A stretch of 64,000 nucleotides of DNA, taken from the NCBI GenBank assembly GCA_038496445.1, contig JALMLS010000466.1, positions 62,001 to 126,000 of the forward strand, written 5' to 3'. The notes under the pieces are model-generated. The model was given only the letters and a program-made list of their open reading frames with translations. It ran no database searches and was not told where the DNA came from. The stretch comes from Trichosphaerium sp. ATCC 40318 (taxonomy: Eukaryota > Protista > Tubulinea). Shown in pieces: positions 6,181 to 15,854 of this stretch; the first letter of the stretch is position 1; each line of letters begins with the position of its first letter. The position numbers and the translations under genes were made by a program.

Positions 6181-9100
6181 TCACGATATCTTAGGCTTAT
6201 GACAAGCAGAAAAATACAAAATTTGCTGTCCATTCGTTGGAATACCTTCCTGAGGTGCACATGTAAAAATTTCAGGAGTACTAATCACAACACTATCTTT
6301 TGAATCAACTTCGCTCTTATCAACAGGTAACACCTTCTCAGTAGTTTCTTTATGTTCTTCAACACTTTGTGTCGCTTCCACGTGAATATCTGAGTCAACA
6401 ACAGCTACATCTTTCAATGTAAGTTTGTCTTCAACCGCCTCTGGTTTGTTCAATTCTTCGTCAACAAGTTGTTGTGGTTTCATCTTTGCAGATGCCAAAC
6501 TGTTGAAAAAGAGTACATGGTTCGTAGTGTTGATCTTTGGTAAATCGAGAGGCTGTTGTATTGGCTGTATATCTTTAGAAGGTTCCTTTGGTTCCTGTTG
6601 TGTAATTTGATTATCATCTTTCGAAGGCTGTTCCTCGGTTTCGTCAGATTCTGTAACGTCTTCAGCTATGCTTGGTTCTGAATTGTCCTCACCACCGTTT
6701 GGAGGTTGTGCTGTGGCTACTGGTTCTTGTGTTAGTTCTTTGATGGCTTCAGGTACTTGTTCTTCAGATTCTGATTCGTTAGCTGGCTCAGGAGCTTCTG
6801 CAACAGCTGCATGTTCTAACGCTGGCTTGGATTGTTGTTCTTTAGGTTCTGCCGATTCTTGGTCTGTTGTTTCAGGTTCCGTTGTGGTCTCAGGCTCTGG
6901 TTCTTTTGGTTCGGGTGCTTGTTCTTTGACTTTCTCAGATTCTGTGTCCTCACTTTGCTCTGGTTCTGATTCATTTGGCTCGGATTCCTCTGTTGGTTCA
7001 AGTTGTAGATCTTTTTCTTCCGTTATTGGTTCAGGTTCTGACTCATTCGCTGCCTCGGGTTCTTGCACTTCGCTTGATTCCTCAACTGATTTAACGGGCG
7101 TGTTTTCTTCAACTGCTGACGCTGTTTGCTCATTATCTAGTTCCTCTTCTTTGTTTCCATCAGTTTCTTGTGATTCCTCAACTACACCTTATTAACACGC
7201 GCCACCATTTAAAAGTCAATATGTACCATCCGAAACCAAACCGTCGCCATCACCTTCGTTGGCTATAGGCTCAGTAACAACTGATTCTTTCGTGACAGCT
7301 TGAGTATCATCAGAAGCCTCCTTTGTACCTTCATTTAAGCCTTTGCTTTGCTCGTTATCCTCAATAGGTTTGACTTCCACTACATCCATTACTTCTGATG
7401 GAGTTTGTTCCTCATTATCACCGAGTACTTCACCTTGAGCTGGAACATTGTTAGAAATAAAAGTAACGTAACAACTTAACATGCCTTCACTTTCAATAGG
7501 TTGAGCTACCTCAACAGGTGTTTCTTCGGAATCTTTTGATACTGGTTCTTCATTAGCACTAGAACCATCACCTACAACTTCTGGTTCTGTTTCTACTTGT
7601 TGTTCAGATGAAATTGGTTCTGTTGGGTGTTCTACTTCGGAGGATTCTTGAGTTTCAGGCTCATTAGCTTCAACGTTGGTAACATCTGCATCCAACGCAA
7701 CAACTGGTAAGTCATTTGCTGGTTCAGCATCAACACGTTCATTAGCAAGTTCCAAGACTTGTTTAGTGGTTGACTCTTCGTTAGTACTGGTTTCTTGATT
7801 CGAAGGTTCAACTTCACTTTCATTACCTTCTTCAGAAAGTACTTGTGTCGTTGGTTCTTCGAGAGCAGTTTCTGCTGTAGCAGTTACTTCTTGCTCATGT
7901 TGATTCTCTTCTAATTCAGTTTGTTCAACTGGTACAGCTTCAAGTGCATCTTCCTCTTGGTTACTGACAGGTTCATTTTCTTCAGTAGCGTCTTCGTTGG
8001 TTGGTGTAGTTTCTTTAACTTCAGCTTGTTCACCTTCGGTTGATTGTGGTTGCTCTCTGTTTTCATTAGCTTGCTCTTCTTCGGTACTAACCTCCACTAC
8101 GTCTTCACTACCTTCAGTTTGTACAACTACTTCTTGAATGTCTTCATTTAATTCTTCAGGTTCTACGGTTTGATTCTCCTTCTTGCCTTCCTTAACCTCT
8201 GTATCTGTGACAATACCTTCTAGTGTCTCATCTACAACACTGTCAACAACACCATCGGCATCAGGAGCTACTTGTTCGGCGTGGTCTGCCGCGTCAGTGG
8301 AATCTCCAATAACTTCTGTCTCAGTTTGCGCAAGTGCGTCATCTTGAGCGACAATGCTGTCATTTGCTTGTTTATCAACTGCATCAAGCACAGCAACATC
8401 CTCCATCGCATCAGGCTCAAACAAGTCGTCATCGCCCCACGTGGCCCAAGGATCATTTTCCTCAGGTATTGCTGCGACTTGGATGTCAGTGCTTCTTTCA
8501 AGCGCTGACTCTACAGGCTCTATTTGGGAACAATGAGTATCACGTGATGTTGTATTATTCCACAAACTTACGATGTTCAACAAGCATAGATATAGGTTGA
8601 GATTGTTCTTCAAGTACATCGAGTGTCACTTGCTTATCTTCCTCTTTTATAGAATCTTGTTGTGTATCTTGCTCTACTAAAAAAAATGAATAAGCAATAT
8701 TTCCTTTACGAGTCAACTGTACCTTCAGGTATATCTTCAAAGGCATCAGTATCATCCAACCAAGCATCGCCAACATCAAAAGCTATACAAGTCAAGTTAA
8801 TGGTCAACTAATTGGTCACAACAGTACCTGATACAGCACTGGCATCCAACCGTTCTACAGTTGGTGAAACTGGAGCAGGCTTTACACTAGGTTCTTCAGG
8901 TGCAGGTTTTGGTGTTGGCTCTTGTGAAGGAGTCGAGGCGACTTCTGTCACTTCAGGTGCTGCCGTTGTAGTTTTAGGTACTTCTTCTGGGGTTACTTTT
9001 GGCTCATCAAAGTCATCATCGAAGTCACCCCATCCTTCACCATCATCCCAAGCTGTAACCTCTGGTTTTACTTGTTGAGCTTTCTCTGGTTTAGCTTCTT

Positions 9101-12100
9101 GAGTCTTCTCTGCAGGTTGAGATTGAACTGGCTCTCCTTGACCTGGTGTGCCAAAGAACGATAAAGCATCCTTCAATGGAGAAGCTGTAAGCTTCTTTGT
9201 AATACCACCAAAGAAACCACCTTTCTTTTCTTCCTTAACATCCTAAATCAAAACCATGAGCCTTTTTTCATAAACAAGACTGTAGTACTTTATCAACATT
9301 AGTGATACCAAAAGAATTGAACCAAGAGCTTGCAGTACTAGCAGGGGCTGACTTTTGTGTTTCTGCTGCTGCAACTGCCTCAGCTTGTTTCTTTAGGCTA
9401 TAACCAAAAGTTAGACATTTCCTTGTGAATAAAAACTAACTAATCGTACTTCTTTTGTCTGATTCTCTCCTTTCGTAGCCTTCTCTGACGCTCTTGTTTG
9501 GTCTCCTTAGCTGGTCTAGAGCACAAAGTAAGTCATTATAGTGTAGGCAGTTGAATACGTACGATTTTTGTGGCTCAGGTGAAGATGGTGCTGCAGATGA
9601 TACAAGTTGTTCAGGTTGAGCAACTGTAGCTGCTAGGAGAGGTTTATTAATTTGTTCTTCTTCCTCTTTCTTTGCTGCTCTTGCTTCTGCAATACGTCTC
9701 CTAGCTTCTGCTTTTTTACGATCACGTTCTTCTTTGTCTTTACGAATAGCTTCTTGCTCTGCACGCTTACGTTCCTCTTCTGCACGTGCTTTTTCTTGCT
9801 CAGCTTCAGACTCGACACGCAACCTTTCAGCTTCCTCTACCTGACGCTCTGCTTCTTCTTCAACTACACGTTGAATCTCTGCTAGCTCTGCTGCCTCTTC
9901 ATCAAGGTGTTGCTCCTCTGCTAATCGTTGACGCTCTAGTTCCTGTAGGTCAAGTAACTTCTGCTCTTTTTCTTTTGTTTCTTTTACAACCCTTTCAAGC
10001 TCAAGACGCTTCCTTTCTGCCTCATCGTCTGGTCCACGTTCTTTGTTTGCTTCTTCTTCTATTATTCTTTGCTCTTTATCAATTATAGCTTGATCTTCAA
10101 GTTCTTTTCTCTTGGTATCTGCTTCTTCCTGTTCTAGACGCAGACGCTCAGATTCCTCTTCTTGACGTATCCTTTCTTCTTCTTCAAGGTTTAGGCGTTC
10201 TGCTTCTTCATCAGCTACACGTTTACGCTCAGCTTCCTCTGCTTCAAGCCGTTCGAGTTCAGCTTTTTCTTCTTCAAAACGTTGACGTTCTGCTTTTAAT
10301 TCAAGCATTTTCTGTCTTTCAGCTTCACGTTCTCTTTCGAGTTGGGCAGCTTCCTCTTCTAGCTTTTTAGAAGCAAGACGTTGCCTTTTATCCTCTTCAG
10401 CCAGACGTTTCTTTTCAGCTTCTTCTGCTTCAAGACGTAGGCGTTCTTCTTCATCAGCTATACGTTTCTTTTCAGCTTCTTCTGCTTCAAGGCGTAGACG
10501 TTCTGCTTCTTCATCAGCTATGCGTTTACGCTCAGCTTCTTCTGCTTCAAGTCGTTGGCGTTCAGCTTCTCGTTCCTTTTCTTGTCGCTCTAGCTCGATC
10601 CTCTCAGCTTCGATGCGTTTTCTCTCTGCTTCCTCAGCAGCTAATCGTTGTCTTTCTGCTTCTTCATTTTCAAGCCTTTGCCTCTCAGCTTCGAGACGCT
10701 GGCGCTCTGCTTCTAGTCTTTGACGTTCGAATTCTTCCACACGTTTGCGTTCTGCTTCTTCTTCTGCTAATCGTTGACGCTCAGCTTCCTCTTTAGCTTC
10801 ACGTATCCTTTCTTCCGCTTCAATACGTAGGCGTTCTGCTTCTTCATCAGCTATGCGTTTACGTTGGGCTTCTTCTGCCTCAAGACGTTGCCTTTCGGCT
10901 TCTTCAGCTAGACGTTTCTTTTCAGCTTGTTCTGCTTCAAGACGTAGACGTTCTGCTTCTTCATCGGCTATACGTTTACGCTCAGCTTCTTCTGCTTCAA
11001 GACGTTGGCGTTCAGCTTCTCGTTCCTTTTCTTGTCGTTCTAGCTCGATCCTCTCAGCTTCTACACGTTGCCTCTCTGCCTCTTCAGCTGCTTGCTTCTC
11101 TTCAAGTCTTTTTTGTTCTTCGGCTTCTCTAATTTTTGCTGCTGCTTCTTCCTTCTTCTTGTCTTCTTCTTCAGCAATTTTCTGAAGGTACGCTTCTTCT
11201 TGCTTAACACGTGCATCAGCCTGAGATTGACGAATCTTTTTCTCTTCATCATCAGCTAACTGACGCTTACGTTGTAGATTCACATCATCTTGCGATCCAC
11301 CAACACCTTTAGCTATGTTCTCTTCGCCATTAGGCTCAACAGTACCGTTTGGAGCTACTTGAGTATCTTCTGTAGTGGATAGAACACCTGATTCAGTCGC
11401 AAATAGTAAATCGTTGAGTTGAGACACTTCCATATCAATTGGTGTATCAACATGTGCCATAAGTGCATCACTCATAAGATCAATATTAATGAGCCTATTG
11501 GAGCAACCAAAAATAGCACTGAAGCATCGCTGTGTGTATGGTAAAAACTTCTCTGCAGATACCTTTAAAGAGTTAGATAATCCTTGAAACCTGTACTGAA
11601 GAGCATAAAAAACTATACTTACCTTGCACAAAGCAGAGTACGCTTTGCGTTCTTCTTTGTCCATATTTTTCTTTATTATATCACGTTCTGCTATCTCAGA
11701 AACAACTGCGGCAAGACTTGTTTCAAGTCGTTTAGCTAACCGATACTGTAGTGATGACGGACAACACTTTCTAGAATACAAACATTAATAACAACTATAA
11801 AATAGGTGGTCAAGATATAGAAAAAGCAAGCGTACCTAAGTTCATTGAATGCTTTAAGCATCGCATTTACGAAAATTGCAAGAGGAGGAAAATCGAGTAA
11901 GATATTAGGAGGTACAAGTGATGTCTCATCCTCATCCTCATCATGATCCGCAACACCTTGGTGGTAAACAATTGTGGATAACTAAAAGCATAGATATTAA
12001 GTACACAAAGTGGATTAATCCAAAGATTGTTAAACAGCGTGTACCTTCTTAAATTGGCTACGAAATTGGCGTTCTGCTTGGCTCAGAGTATCTGAAAACA

Positions 12101-13719
12101 ATCCAAATACACGTCTCTCATAAGGTTCGATTAGTAAACCTACAATAAGTATTAATAATAGGTAGTTAGAGAACTCACTTTACCTCGAAAGTCAATGCCA
12201 ACAGTAGACAAGTTTTGACCAAAATACATGACATGATCAAGCAAAGCAGAAAGTGATGCACCATCGCTTATTCTCGGTAGGTATTCTTCTATCACTGATA
12301 CAAACTTCGTGATTTGAAAGTTTAACCAACTAAATAGTATGCTATTGGCTTCATATCCAACACTGTCGATAAAGATGGAGTTATACAATACAATAATCTC
12401 CCTCACTTCTGCTCTGATAATATCAATCACTTTACTCAAGTATATGTAAGCATTAGAAGTAGGTGTTAGGCTTATAGCATTCTCAACGTGTTGACTCCTA
12501 AACGAACATAAACAAAGGAACAAAACAACCACAAGTAAAACTGTAAAAAAACCAAAAAAAGCGAGAGAGGAGTATTTTCGCAGCAATTACTGGTTGGTAT
12601 AAGAACTCCTCAGAGCTCTATCCAGTAACTAAAGTACTTTTCTCATACATAATCTAGTTCTTTCAAGTTTCATTTTAGAAAATACGAACCTGCACTGGAG
12701 AAACGTGACGCGTAACTCTGCACCAGAATAAACATCAAGACGTTTTAAATAATCAATTATCTTGTGGAAATCATGAATATCAGGAGGTCCAGTAAGTTGT
12801 TGATGTAGCTATTATAATGCATTAGAATGGTTATAAATCATTATATATCATAATCAACATAACATACCTGAGAAATAAGAGTCTCAGTAGTGGTGTCAAC
12901 CTCTTTTTTAATATTTTGTATCAAACCAATATCAGCAAACCTTGTAGCAAGACGTAACGCAAAATCACGTAACTGTAGAGCATCCTAGACAATATATATT
13001 AGTCTGACGCACTTGATAATATCAGTGTACATCGTATTGCTTCGTTTTAATAGTTGTATCTATAAGTTGAGGCAATTCAAGCAATTCCACAAGCGAAGAA
13101 TGCTGGCGAAGCGTAGCTTGCTCTATAGCGCGTTGTTCAGCTATTGTAGCTGCTCTGTCGCAAAATTCGCTAAGACCTTTTGATACGTTCGGTAATAGTC
13201 CTGTAATGACTGACAAGCTTTCTCCAACATCGCTGACCTTGAAAGAAGGATTATTATTCCGTTGTTTTTTTCTTTTTTTTGTTGTAGAATGATGGAAAAG
13301 GGGTCATAACTCACTTGTTTTTTGATTTCTTGCGTGCATTGAGCCGTGTCAATAAATGTTTTGTAATTTTTAAACGTCAACGTTTCTATTTGTTCTTCAA
13401 GCTCCTTCCTTTCTCGTGATAGTCTTTTTGGCTCTTCTTGTAGTTTATCAAGCGTATGAGATGTTATTACACCAACATAGTCCGCCAATGACACATCCTC
13501 GGGAAAATCGATGTGTGATACGTCTTCAGTTGTAAAAACTGCCGTCCCTGGTAACAGAATTTTAGAAAAAAGAAGCGACGTTAAAAAGTGCCAATAACGA
13601 CATTCAACGCGTTGGAATAATAAATGGCGAGGATAGCTTGGTGTTTAGCGTGTTTTGTGATATTAATTGTGAAAAACGCGTAATAGTGGTATACCTTGAA
13701 TCTGTGATTGCGCTAACAT
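6181..13719 (-). CDS. COG8: Conserved oligomeric Golgi complex subunit 8 (Dor1) with a very long C-terminal extension (charged helical repeats plus acidic low-complexity tail)
   Basis: COG8 motifs: LQEEPKRLSRE..LTFKNYKTFI, LVELLELPQLIDT, LLDHVMYFGQNLSTVGIDFRG, LLDFPPLAIFVNAMLKAFNELR, EKFLPYTQRCF. The last COG8 exon runs without a stop into the E/R/A repeat ORF, and later exons join in frame through canonical splice sites to a TGA at 6181. The start ATG (13719) and the final exon are less certain. Confidence 0.85.
10130..11110 (-). repeat. Coding tandem repeats (EAERQRLEAE / EAERKRIADEEAERLRLEAE) including a near-identical ~120-nt duplicated block
   Basis: EAERIELERQEKEREAERQRLEAEEAERKRIADEEAERLRLEAE occurs twice (about 10480-10610 and 10930-11060). 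The DNA units ttctgcttcttcatcagcta and ttcaagacg recur. Confidence 0.9.
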
Positions 13720-14104: not shown

Positions 14105-15854
14105 TTACTTTTGAGATTGCCCAGATGGTTGGTCAAGCTTTACTTGTGGGTACACACGTGATAGTACTTGTGGCCAATATTTAATTAATCCACCTGCTCC
14201 AAAAGCTTTCAATTGGGCACTGGAGATATTACCCAGATCTTGGGGGTTTGAAATGTGTAACCGACTGCTAAGGGATGACAAAAATGTTATGACATTATTA
14301 TCATTAAGCCAATAATTTTGTGGTTTATAGCCTTGTGACGACGCTTTTGAAGAATCGTTAGAAAGTGCAATATGTAGTATCAAATTACTTACGGAACAAT
14401 GAGTGGTCCCAATGCCTTGTAGGATAAACTTCGCTGAGTAATTGGAACAACCTCGAACCACCTTTGTACATGCTACAAATTTGTTAATACTTGTACAAAA
14501 ATAATAGCATACTGTAGTAACTGCCAACCACCTTCATCAATTAAATGTTGCTGATTGACGTCATACCAATCATTTTCAATATAAACACCATGTTTCCTTT
14601 CAATCTAAAACAGTCACAAATCAATAGATCAACATACTCACATTTTCTACAAATAGTGCCTTAGTTCGTGGTGTCCAGCAGTTTTTCGAGGTGTAGGCTA
14701 AAAGAAAGCATAAATCTAAAGGTACATATTGAACAAGTAATCTCACTGAACAGCCAAGGAAGCCACGTTCGATCAGGATACACCTCCTCCAACATTTGGT
14801 GGAAGGAGTCATTGTATCTTCTATGCAAAAGTCACATGCCAAAACGGTTTATCATTCTTTACATACCGTAACAAACCTGCGCCACCAAATTCCTGGATAT
14901 CAGTAGTTCTAACATTATACCACTTATCTAGAGATGAAACACCGTGGTTTTTCTCAAACTAGGCTCATTTAGATACCAAAGTTCTTGTACTTTAGTGCCT
15001 CAGCTATGAATGCCATTTGGTTTTCTGTAGATTCCCAATAACTCTCTGGCACCTTTGCTAAGAACGTCATTAAATCTGGTTTGTTATTTATTAGTAATAT
15101 CCGTACAAAACCTCCAAGGATGCCAATCTTTTTCTGGATAAACAGTATAGAGCATTTTTGACAAAGAACAGTTAAACTTTCTACGTTTGCAATCAACACT
15201 AAATAAATGTAGCGAACGCACGCCAGTACACCATTGCCATATTTCATAATATCTTGTACATTTACGTTAAACCAATCATCCAATTGCATAACGCCAAGCC
15301 TACGTTCCATCTAAAAAACTGTCACTTCTCAAAAAATTTAATGTTTTTTGTACAGCAATAACAAATGAAGCAACGTTCAGTTCAGGTAATACAGAAACAT
15401 TCTCTAGAAGATGTATTTGTTATTTCGAATCATCAAGCGATAGTACCAAACTTCCAAGATTTCCATGAGTAGTCAGGATACACGTGTTGTAATAAAGATG
15501 CTTGAGAACCTCCGAATTCCCTGTTGTAGATTAGCCGAAAATACAGAGGCACGTGCTTACTTTTTAAGAAATGACTTTACTCTAGGTTGTATGACATCGC
15601 TCAGGATCACATTGTACCAATCAGACAGTGTTAGTACGTTTAGGCGGATTTCAGCCTAAGAAACAGTAAACAACGCTCACACAATATCATGGCAGTTATT
15701 GAGTACCTTCATGACAAGTTTTTCGAGCGTTGAACCATTCTCGTATGGCAGACGTGCGCCTGTGCCATAATAAGCCACAACGCAGTGCAAAGGGTGGTTT
15801 TTTACCTCTCAGAGCGCCTTTGGACGTAGACTGTGTCAGGTAGTATTTAGCCAT
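14105..15854 (-). CDS. Uncharacterised Trp-rich tandem-repeat protein with a possible mitochondrial presequence
   Basis: The exons repeat a unit resembling L(D/S)DW(Y/F)NV...DI...GG...Y..S...L..VYP...W.PW.F..VP..YW about 5 times. The N-terminus MAKYYLTQSTSKGALRGKKPPFALRCGLLWHRR is basic and lacks acidic residues. Confidence 0.7.

Follow-up and report, generated by a model that had tools for sequence, protein, structure and literature searches.

The DNA analysed here is a 64,000-nucleotide stretch of the Trichosphaerium sp. ATCC 40318 genome (contig JALMLS010000466.1, positions 62,001 to 126,000; "the window" in what follows). On its minus strand, from 13719 to 6181, it carries what is very probably a single gene of at least 17 exons and ~2,150 codons, the COG8 orthologue of this organism. 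COG8 is a lobe-B subunit of the conserved oligomeric Golgi (COG) vesicle-tethering complex. In the predicted protein the COG8 core is followed by an extension of ~1,620 residues: a very long, highly charged helix, and after it a tail of ~1,000 residues, which holds clusters of aromatic and acidic residues and ends in a long polyacidic region. The explanation we consider most probable overall, with some reserve, is a long-armed COG8 in which a single alpha-helix (SAH) acts as a spacer presenting these motifs. An earlier interpretation of the same DNA made from its letters alone (the sequence-only reading) had proposed a golgin-like extension of ~1500 residues on COG8. The great length is upheld, at a somewhat higher figure and with the qualification that seven introns divide the extension after the exon it shares with the core; the likeness to golgins is not, as discussed below.

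The identity of the core is the firmest part of this picture. Homology searches, like structure predictions, were run exon by exon, each exon singly. The Pfam family Dor1 (PF04124) is matched in five successive open stretches, exons 2-6, running from 13545 to 12185, with E values of 1e-10 to 1e-19 and scores of 23.7-70.7 bits against a gathering cut-off of 23.3; together they span positions 4-319 of the 339-position profile. The alignment of exons 2 to 9b with the COG8 of Ceratiomyxa (P0014) is collinear over residues 42-609 of that protein, and the exons align likewise with the COG8s of Diphylleia, Mastigamoeba, and others. With exon 6 as query, HMMER run in full against 1.84 billion representative proteins returned 239 COG8-family matches, the best at 45% identity. 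The protein has the Dor1 domain in full, an N-terminal helix of the Vps51/COG type, and the conserved C-terminal segments PPLA..N..L..NEL and FLPY..C. By these comparisons the core, of ~515 residues, is a COG8 orthologue, collinear with its counterparts in Amoebozoa and other eukaryotes.

The exon model was built by reading the sequence for canonical GT-AG introns, with phases, split codons, and stops verified for each exon. A first version had 16 exons, from an ATG at 13719 to a TGA at 6181, with 2,172 codons and introns of 39-192 nt, mostly 44-77; the genome has ~38% G+C and short introns. Coordinates are given here in the direction of transcription. Core exons 2-8 (13547-13315, 13237-13031, 12984-12868, 12808-12690, 12497-12184, 12139-12045, and 11981-11836) were placed by the Dor1 matches and by alignment to homologues, and are separated by GT-AG introns of 44-192 nt. 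Exon 1 (13719-13695; MLAQSQIQ) is a proposal, made because exons 2-3 contain no in-frame ATG; its phase-1 donor, GTATAC, would join the acceptor at 13548 and restore the frame through a split GGG codon. We infer its placement, for which there is no homology support.

Comparison with homologues added one more intron, a 60-nt segment at 11622-11563 with GTAAGT as donor, CTAAC as branch site, and AAG as acceptor. Being in frame and free of stops, it is invisible to open reading frame (ORF) analysis; only the collinearity with other COG8s exposed it. On its upstream side, exon 9a (11770-11623; KCCPSSLQYRLAKRLE...SALCK) holds part of the COG8 C-terminal region and aligns to residues 475-522 of the Ceratiomyxa protein; exon 9b, downstream, begins at residue 525, so that the two pieces abut. 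Excision removes 20 residues and yields LCK/VSAEKFLPY (slash at the junction), which matches MCKSVSEVFLPY in the Ceratiomyxa protein. Introns of 27 or 32 nt after LCK were considered as well and rejected: the 60-nt intron suits the homologues and preserves the frame.

The join between core and extension lies within exon 9b (11562-9563), 666 codons without a stop. It begins with the last conserved COG8 segment (~11562-11480), including the motif KFLPYTQRCFSAIFG; a linker of 66 codons follows (~11480-11293), and then the helix, of ~554 residues (11292-9631). The sequence-only reading had put KFLPYTQRCFSAIFG and the helix in a single stop-free exon, and this holds; both also lie in a longer stop-free minus-strand ORF, 11784-9439 (782 codons), but given the 60-nt intron it is exon 9b, not the whole of that ORF, that is the shared exon. 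Only ~200 nt separate the COG8 core from the helix, and these are in frame and coding-like. Throughout exon 9b only the COG8 frame is open, the other two being closed. At the base composition of the gene's own introns, the 66-codon linker would be free of stops with a chance of ~0.009 (about once in 110), and the 666-codon exon with a chance of ~2e-21.

Beyond exon 9b the frame passes through seven introns, all canonical GT-AG, 39-52 nt long, and frame-keeping; in length and in their GTAC style of donor they resemble the homology-supported introns of the core. Exons 10-13 (214 codons) contain no ATG, and therefore offer no independent start of translation. If the first of these introns (9562-9516) were retained, the frame would end within ~40 codons, at 9439, and the product would be COG8 plus helix; the COG8-helix junction is thus the most secure part of the extension, while the connection of the tail to the helix requires splicing. 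As far as genome sequence goes, the evidence supports a single polypeptide in which a very long extension follows COG8 at its C-terminus, and we infer that a continuous mRNA spans core, helix, and tail.

The helix had been described from its letters as an E/R/K/A-rich run of ~550 residues, nearly free of Pro and Gly, which proves accurate: its length is 540-554 residues, and 540 of them include just one Pro and one Gly. Glu makes up 32%, Arg 17%, Ala 15%, and Lys 9%, for 62% charged and 14% hydrophobic residues overall, and it is net acidic. Opposite charges are spaced i/i+4 in 154 pairs, compared with 99 +/- 7.6 in shuffled sequences, and only 34 such pairs have like charges. By contrast with this charge pattern, heptads are lacking: the mean best hydrophobic occupancy of a/d positions is 0.31, 0.75 is attained in none of the 28-residue windows, and a 3.5-residue periodicity is absent. 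These charge and heptad measures are simple computations of our own, distinct from the published predictors. AlphaFold2, run without an alignment, predicts helices at exon 9b residues 91-506 and 511-644, mostly at pLDDT 75-89 and with a break only at GPDD (~10044-10033), though such a prediction says nothing of oligomeric state. The absence of a heptad signal, the low hydrophobic content, and the strong i/i+4 pattern argue for a single alpha-helix rather than a coiled coil of the golgin type. The region therefore looks like an ER/K SAH, presumably helical as a monomer; at 0.15 nm per residue, its fully helical length would be ~80 nm.

The DNA coding for the helix has tandem periodicities of 30 and 60 nt, with internal repeats at 60-87% identity. 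It also has a 252-nt duplication, its copies 450 nt apart and 87% identical, between which dS is 0.41 and dN 0.08. The resulting dN/dS of 0.19 indicates that the helix frame has been under purifying selection since the duplication. The helix is a product of tandem duplication of 10- or 20-residue units, plus a segmental duplication of 150 residues, and was later kept by purifying selection.

After the helix, the tail runs from a basic patch through three hydrophobic patches rich in Phe or Phe-Gly and three Trp/Phe-acidic clusters to some 760-800 polyacidic residues. The basic patch, PAKETKQERQRRLRKERIRQK, with a net charge of +7, makes up exon 10 (9515-9450). Exon 11 (9397-9289) contains SSWFNSFGITNVDK and, within it, SWFNSFG; exon 12 (9242-8828) opens with GGFFGGITKKL...LSFFGTPG and becomes Pro/Glu/Lys-rich, with the first aromatic-acidic cluster, TAWDDGEGWGDFDDDFDEP, at ~9056-9000. 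The second cluster, FDVGDAWLDDTDAFEDIPE, is in exon 13 (8782-8723). An acidic exon 14 (8676-8572) follows, and then exon 15 (8519-7227), where the third cluster, ENDPWATWGDDDLFEP (~8460-8398), gives way to polyacidic disordered sequence. Exon 16 (7187-6181) is polyacidic and Pro/Glu/Thr-rich except for its final ~130 residues, which are less biased, and closes with the stop TGA at 6183-6181; some 30 nt past it, an AATAAA read from the sequence (6151-6146) is a likely polyadenylation signal. Net charge is -112 over the 430 residues of exon 15, and -66 for exon 16. The order given in the sequence-only reading, SWFNSFG and then GGFFGGITKKL ahead of acidic sequence, is thus what the exons contain.

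Trp and Phe stand amid Asp and Glu in AWDDGEGWGDFDDDFDEP, DAWLDDTDAFED, and DPWATWGDDDLFEP. A Trp-acidic pattern within predicted disorder is found at AWDDGEGWGDFDDDF, DAWLDDTDAFED, and DPWATWGDDDLFEP, as a pattern only and not as a match to the ELM regular expression. All five Trp residues of the tail fall within ~260 residues after the helix, and four of the five are in the three aromatic-acidic clusters. At first glance SWFNSFG and GGFFGG might suggest an amphipathic lipid sensor of the ALPS type, but this is not supported: the helical hydrophobic moment never exceeds 0.40 in windows of 18 residues.

Searches with parts of the extension returned little. Pfam gives no match in the long open stretches beyond the core, and none at E <= 0.1 for the tail pieces, which have no GRIP, GRAB, or transmembrane anchor; the end of exon 16, judged by eye, is polar and without a hydrophobic span. 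No relatives of exon 15 were found in a word-index search with 8,000 scored candidates, exon 12 has no usable look-alike in the ESM Atlas, and a metagenome scan with the COG8 C-terminus and linker found no relatives.

Trichosphaerium COG8 appears to be by far the longest COG8 found. Among the HMMER matches, most complete COG8s have 460-720 residues, against ~2,150 here. Counted from the conserved PPLA..NEL motif in 79 N-terminally complete representative COG8s, the residues remaining to the C-terminus have a median of 141, quartiles of 92 and 200, and a maximum of 813; in Trichosphaerium they number ~1,734, so that the exceptional length implied by the sequence-only reading is confirmed by this comparison. 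The tails of the family vary in composition: dictyostelid-like sequences have poly-Ser/Asn/Gln, and Mastigamoeba an acidic tail rich in Ala, Glu, and Gln.

Each element of the extension has a smaller counterpart somewhere in the family. The 813-residue maximum belongs to COG8 of another amoebozoan, Mastigamoeba balamuthi (EukProt EP00727_P013266; 1,255 aa, annotated COG8), which likewise consists of a core and a long, acidic, low-complexity tail; two further long COG8s, P0113 (1,164 aa) and P0100 (855 aa), also have acidic low-complexity tails. All three, however, are without an ER/K helix and without Trp-acidic clusters, and their tails are half the Trichosphaerium length or less. In four metagenome-derived COG8s (P0075, P0044, P0028, and P0073), a Pro/Gly-free segment rich in Arg, Glu, and Lys stands right after the core, as it does here, but it is ~50-80 residues long instead of ~550, and no long tail follows. 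The COG8 of Diphylleia rotans (EukProt EP00002_P022786; 722 aa, from a transcriptome) has an acidic tail ending in Trp motifs flanked by Asp and Glu, WKDDGWGDDGWGEEE, to be compared with WDDGEGWGDFDDD here; it differs in having no helix spacer, a tail of ~200 residues, and its motifs at the extreme C-terminus. These precedents make the fusion biologically plausible, and by the same token lower its categorical novelty: what is new, judging by the predicted proteins, is the combination and its size, in an extreme variant of the known COG8 family. A literature search found no paper describing a COG8 extension.

Two observations extend beyond this gene. Several environmental eukaryotes that look unrelated have a short ER/K helix after the core, which suggests that COG8 has a recurrent C-terminal feature not yet described. 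The second concerns COG3, which usually has ~800 residues. In the portion available of the Trichosphaerium gene table (PMC10521059, supplementary file 5), which has no COG8 entry, COG3 model TRSP10117.t1 is listed with the figure 1240; if this is a count of residues, that COG3 is well above the usual size, and other Trichosphaerium COG subunits may also be extended.

Three known systems bear on what such an extension might do. In the usual division of labour, long coiled-coil golgins capture vesicles, and compact multisubunit complexes such as COG dock them. The golgins GMAP-210, TMF, and golgin-84 offer the idea of a long rod able to hold vesicle-binding motifs far from a Golgi anchor, and the sequence-only reading had seen a golgin-type arm. 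Golgins, however, are homodimeric coiled coils with a GRIP, GRAB, or transmembrane anchor; the COG8 extension, with its 14% hydrophobic helix, has neither heptads nor such an anchor, and the assignment fails on both of the defining features examined. The anchor of the arm would instead be the COG complex itself.

A parallel for the tail is the lasso of Dsl1, a CATCHR tether, which is represented in ELM by the motif class LIG_deltaCOP1_diTrp_1: here too an acidic unstructured segment with Trp motifs is carried on a tether subunit. The Trp motifs of the lasso bind delta-COP and alpha-COP and capture COPI vesicles, and COG has for its part been reported to interact with the COPI subunits gamma-COP and beta-COP (PMC4868844, PMC7145657). 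Dsl1 nevertheless belongs to a different complex and is a different subunit from COG8, and coat binding by Trichosphaerium COG8 is a prediction only.

For the helix, the closest likeness is to the ER/K SAH domains of myosin VI and X, INCENP, and the KER region of CAF-1, which share its composition, its i/i+4 charges, and the absence of a hydrophobic seam (PMC4571873, PMC5812594, PMC10335832). A role as spacer or leash between functional parts is proposed there for these domains, as it is here for COG8, and the single helix of INCENP is described as a flexible leash (PMC4571873). The literature search found no SAH described in a tethering complex. Characterised SAH domains range from tens of residues to ~200, while the COG8 helix, predicted at ~550, is also net acidic. 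We know of no tether with a rod of the SAH type, and the COG8 helix is, to our knowledge, several times longer than any characterised SAH.

These likenesses suggest a mechanism, the spacer helix with coat capture, that we hold only tentatively. The COG8 core would enter lobe B of COG as usual, and the helix would serve as a monomeric, semi-rigid spacer or leash comparable to the INCENP SAH, holding the aromatic-acidic motifs up to tens of nanometers from COG. Those motifs could bind coat appendages on incoming vesicles, as the Dsl1 lasso binds COPI, and the capture radius of COG would grow; the polyanionic chain beyond them may serve as an entropic extender, repelled by membranes. In its most specific and more doubtful form, COG8 would be a "fishing rod", with a monomeric SAH of ~80 nm holding COPI- or adaptor-binding Trp-acidic motifs off the core. 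Long-range capture, assigned elsewhere to separate golgins, would then be done by one polypeptide. A COG subunit that had its own ~80-nm rod, together with candidate motifs for coat binding, would amount to a natural experiment in merging the two roles, and would give a testable link from COG to vesicle coats; the helix itself would be an unusually long natural SAH, useful for the study of spacer mechanics. Interest would rise considerably with a full-length transcript and a demonstration of coat binding.

Several points weigh against a long-armed COG8 that presents binding motifs. Among representative COG8 tails, only one of 49 has Trp-acidic motifs, and since the Trichosphaerium tail is without detectable relatives, conservation cannot support a function for it. 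The motifs lie in the middle of the extension and not at its tip, with ~800 polyacidic residues after them, and the FG-rich patches are not strongly amphipathic (hydrophobic moment no higher than 0.40 in all 18-residue windows). In a repeat of low complexity, compositional constraint can account for part of a low dN/dS. The gene model is weakest at exon 1 and at the 39-nt last intron, and the collections searched contained no protein, transcript-derived or otherwise, from this gene.

In a rival explanation the extension is translated but neutral, or useful only for its bulk physical properties: COG8 C-termini would accept tails of any kind, and in this lineage a low-complexity expansion would have grown by repeat slippage, acting perhaps as an entropic bristle or solubility tail, with no specific role in tethering or coat binding. 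We consider this rather unlikely. In its favour, eukaryotic COG8 tails differ greatly in length and make-up, this one has no relatives, the helix is built of tandem repeats, and short motif matches could arise by chance in acidic sequence. Neutral growth fits poorly, however, with a dN/dS of 0.19 between copies that are 87% identical in DNA, with ~4.9 kb that remains open over eight exons, with an i/i+4 charge pattern far above that of shuffled sequences, and with the confinement of the five Trp residues, four of which are in the clusters, to a stretch of ~260 residues just beyond the helix. Even a neutral tail would show the freedom with which eukaryotic COG8s accept additions at the C-terminus.

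It is less probable, indeed improbable, that the model overstates the protein, in that the main mRNA ends, or undergoes alternative splicing, soon after the core, or stops after the helix by retaining 9562-9516, with the full form of ~2,150 residues rare or absent. Stop-free in-frame introns do hide in this gene (11622-11563, and perhaps one at 7484-7440), so unseen splicing is possible, and retention of the first tail intron would indeed leave COG8 plus helix, ending at 9439. Residues 1-200 of ORF 11784-9439 had no match in a word-index protein search covering proteins of 430-1,368 residues, and the protein collections hold no exact record of the 467-residue ORF 8619-7219; these results, with a best match of only 45% for exon 6, indicate that the product of the gene is absent from the collections searched. 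Against a shortened product, there is no in-frame stop between core and helix, and of the linker's frames only that of COG8 is open; the tail exons are compatible in phase, and exons 10-13 have no start codon of their own; and open frames as long as those of exons 15 and 16 would not be expected to persist untranslated.

An assembly artefact, two loci joined in or beside the repetitive ER/K-coding DNA, is very improbable. That DNA is internally repetitive, and if the contig belongs to the published Trichosphaerium assembly, its DNA was whole-genome amplified beforehand, which can yield chimeras (PMC10521059). The COG8-helix junction lies, however, in unique, non-repeated sequence with the frame kept, and the internal repeats have diverged to 60-87% identity and are not near-identical. 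A dispersed family of ER/K repeats was considered as a cause of mis-assembly and rejected, there being no similar DNA elsewhere in the 64-kb window. The published assembly, whose G+C content of 37.7% and mean intron length of 75 bp fit this window, was made from amplified DNA with long Nanopore and PacBio reads and polished with Illumina data (PMC10521059), and short ER/K helices occur right after the core in other COG8s independently. Finally, the helix might be a genuine parallel coiled coil of the golgin kind, pairing two COG8 chains or COG complexes: coiled coil is a frequent annotation for long charged helices, and AlphaFold2 gives a helix without an oligomeric state. This is very improbable, however, in the face of an a/d mean of 0.31, no window at 0.75, 14% hydrophobic residues, and a dominant charge pattern favouring i/i+4 salt bridges.

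Some minor features of the region were also noted. Inside exon 15, the AT-rich segment 7484-7440 (GCATGT...CTAAC...TTCCAG) is a candidate 45-nt GC-AG intron, in frame and stop-free, and encodes an odd hydrophobic insert, MLSCYVTFISNNVP, amid polyacidic sequence; were it also spliced, the gene model would shrink by 15 codons. Ten of the 16 GT donors start GTAC, and most acceptors are TAG, an unusual donor flavour that may aid gene modelling in the Trichosphaerium genome. The upstream neighbour, a minus-strand gene at 14106-15200 that stops near 14106, seems to consist of repeated modules separated by short introns and ending in a motif like VYP..W.PW.F (VYPEKDWHPWRF, VYPDRTWLPWLF).

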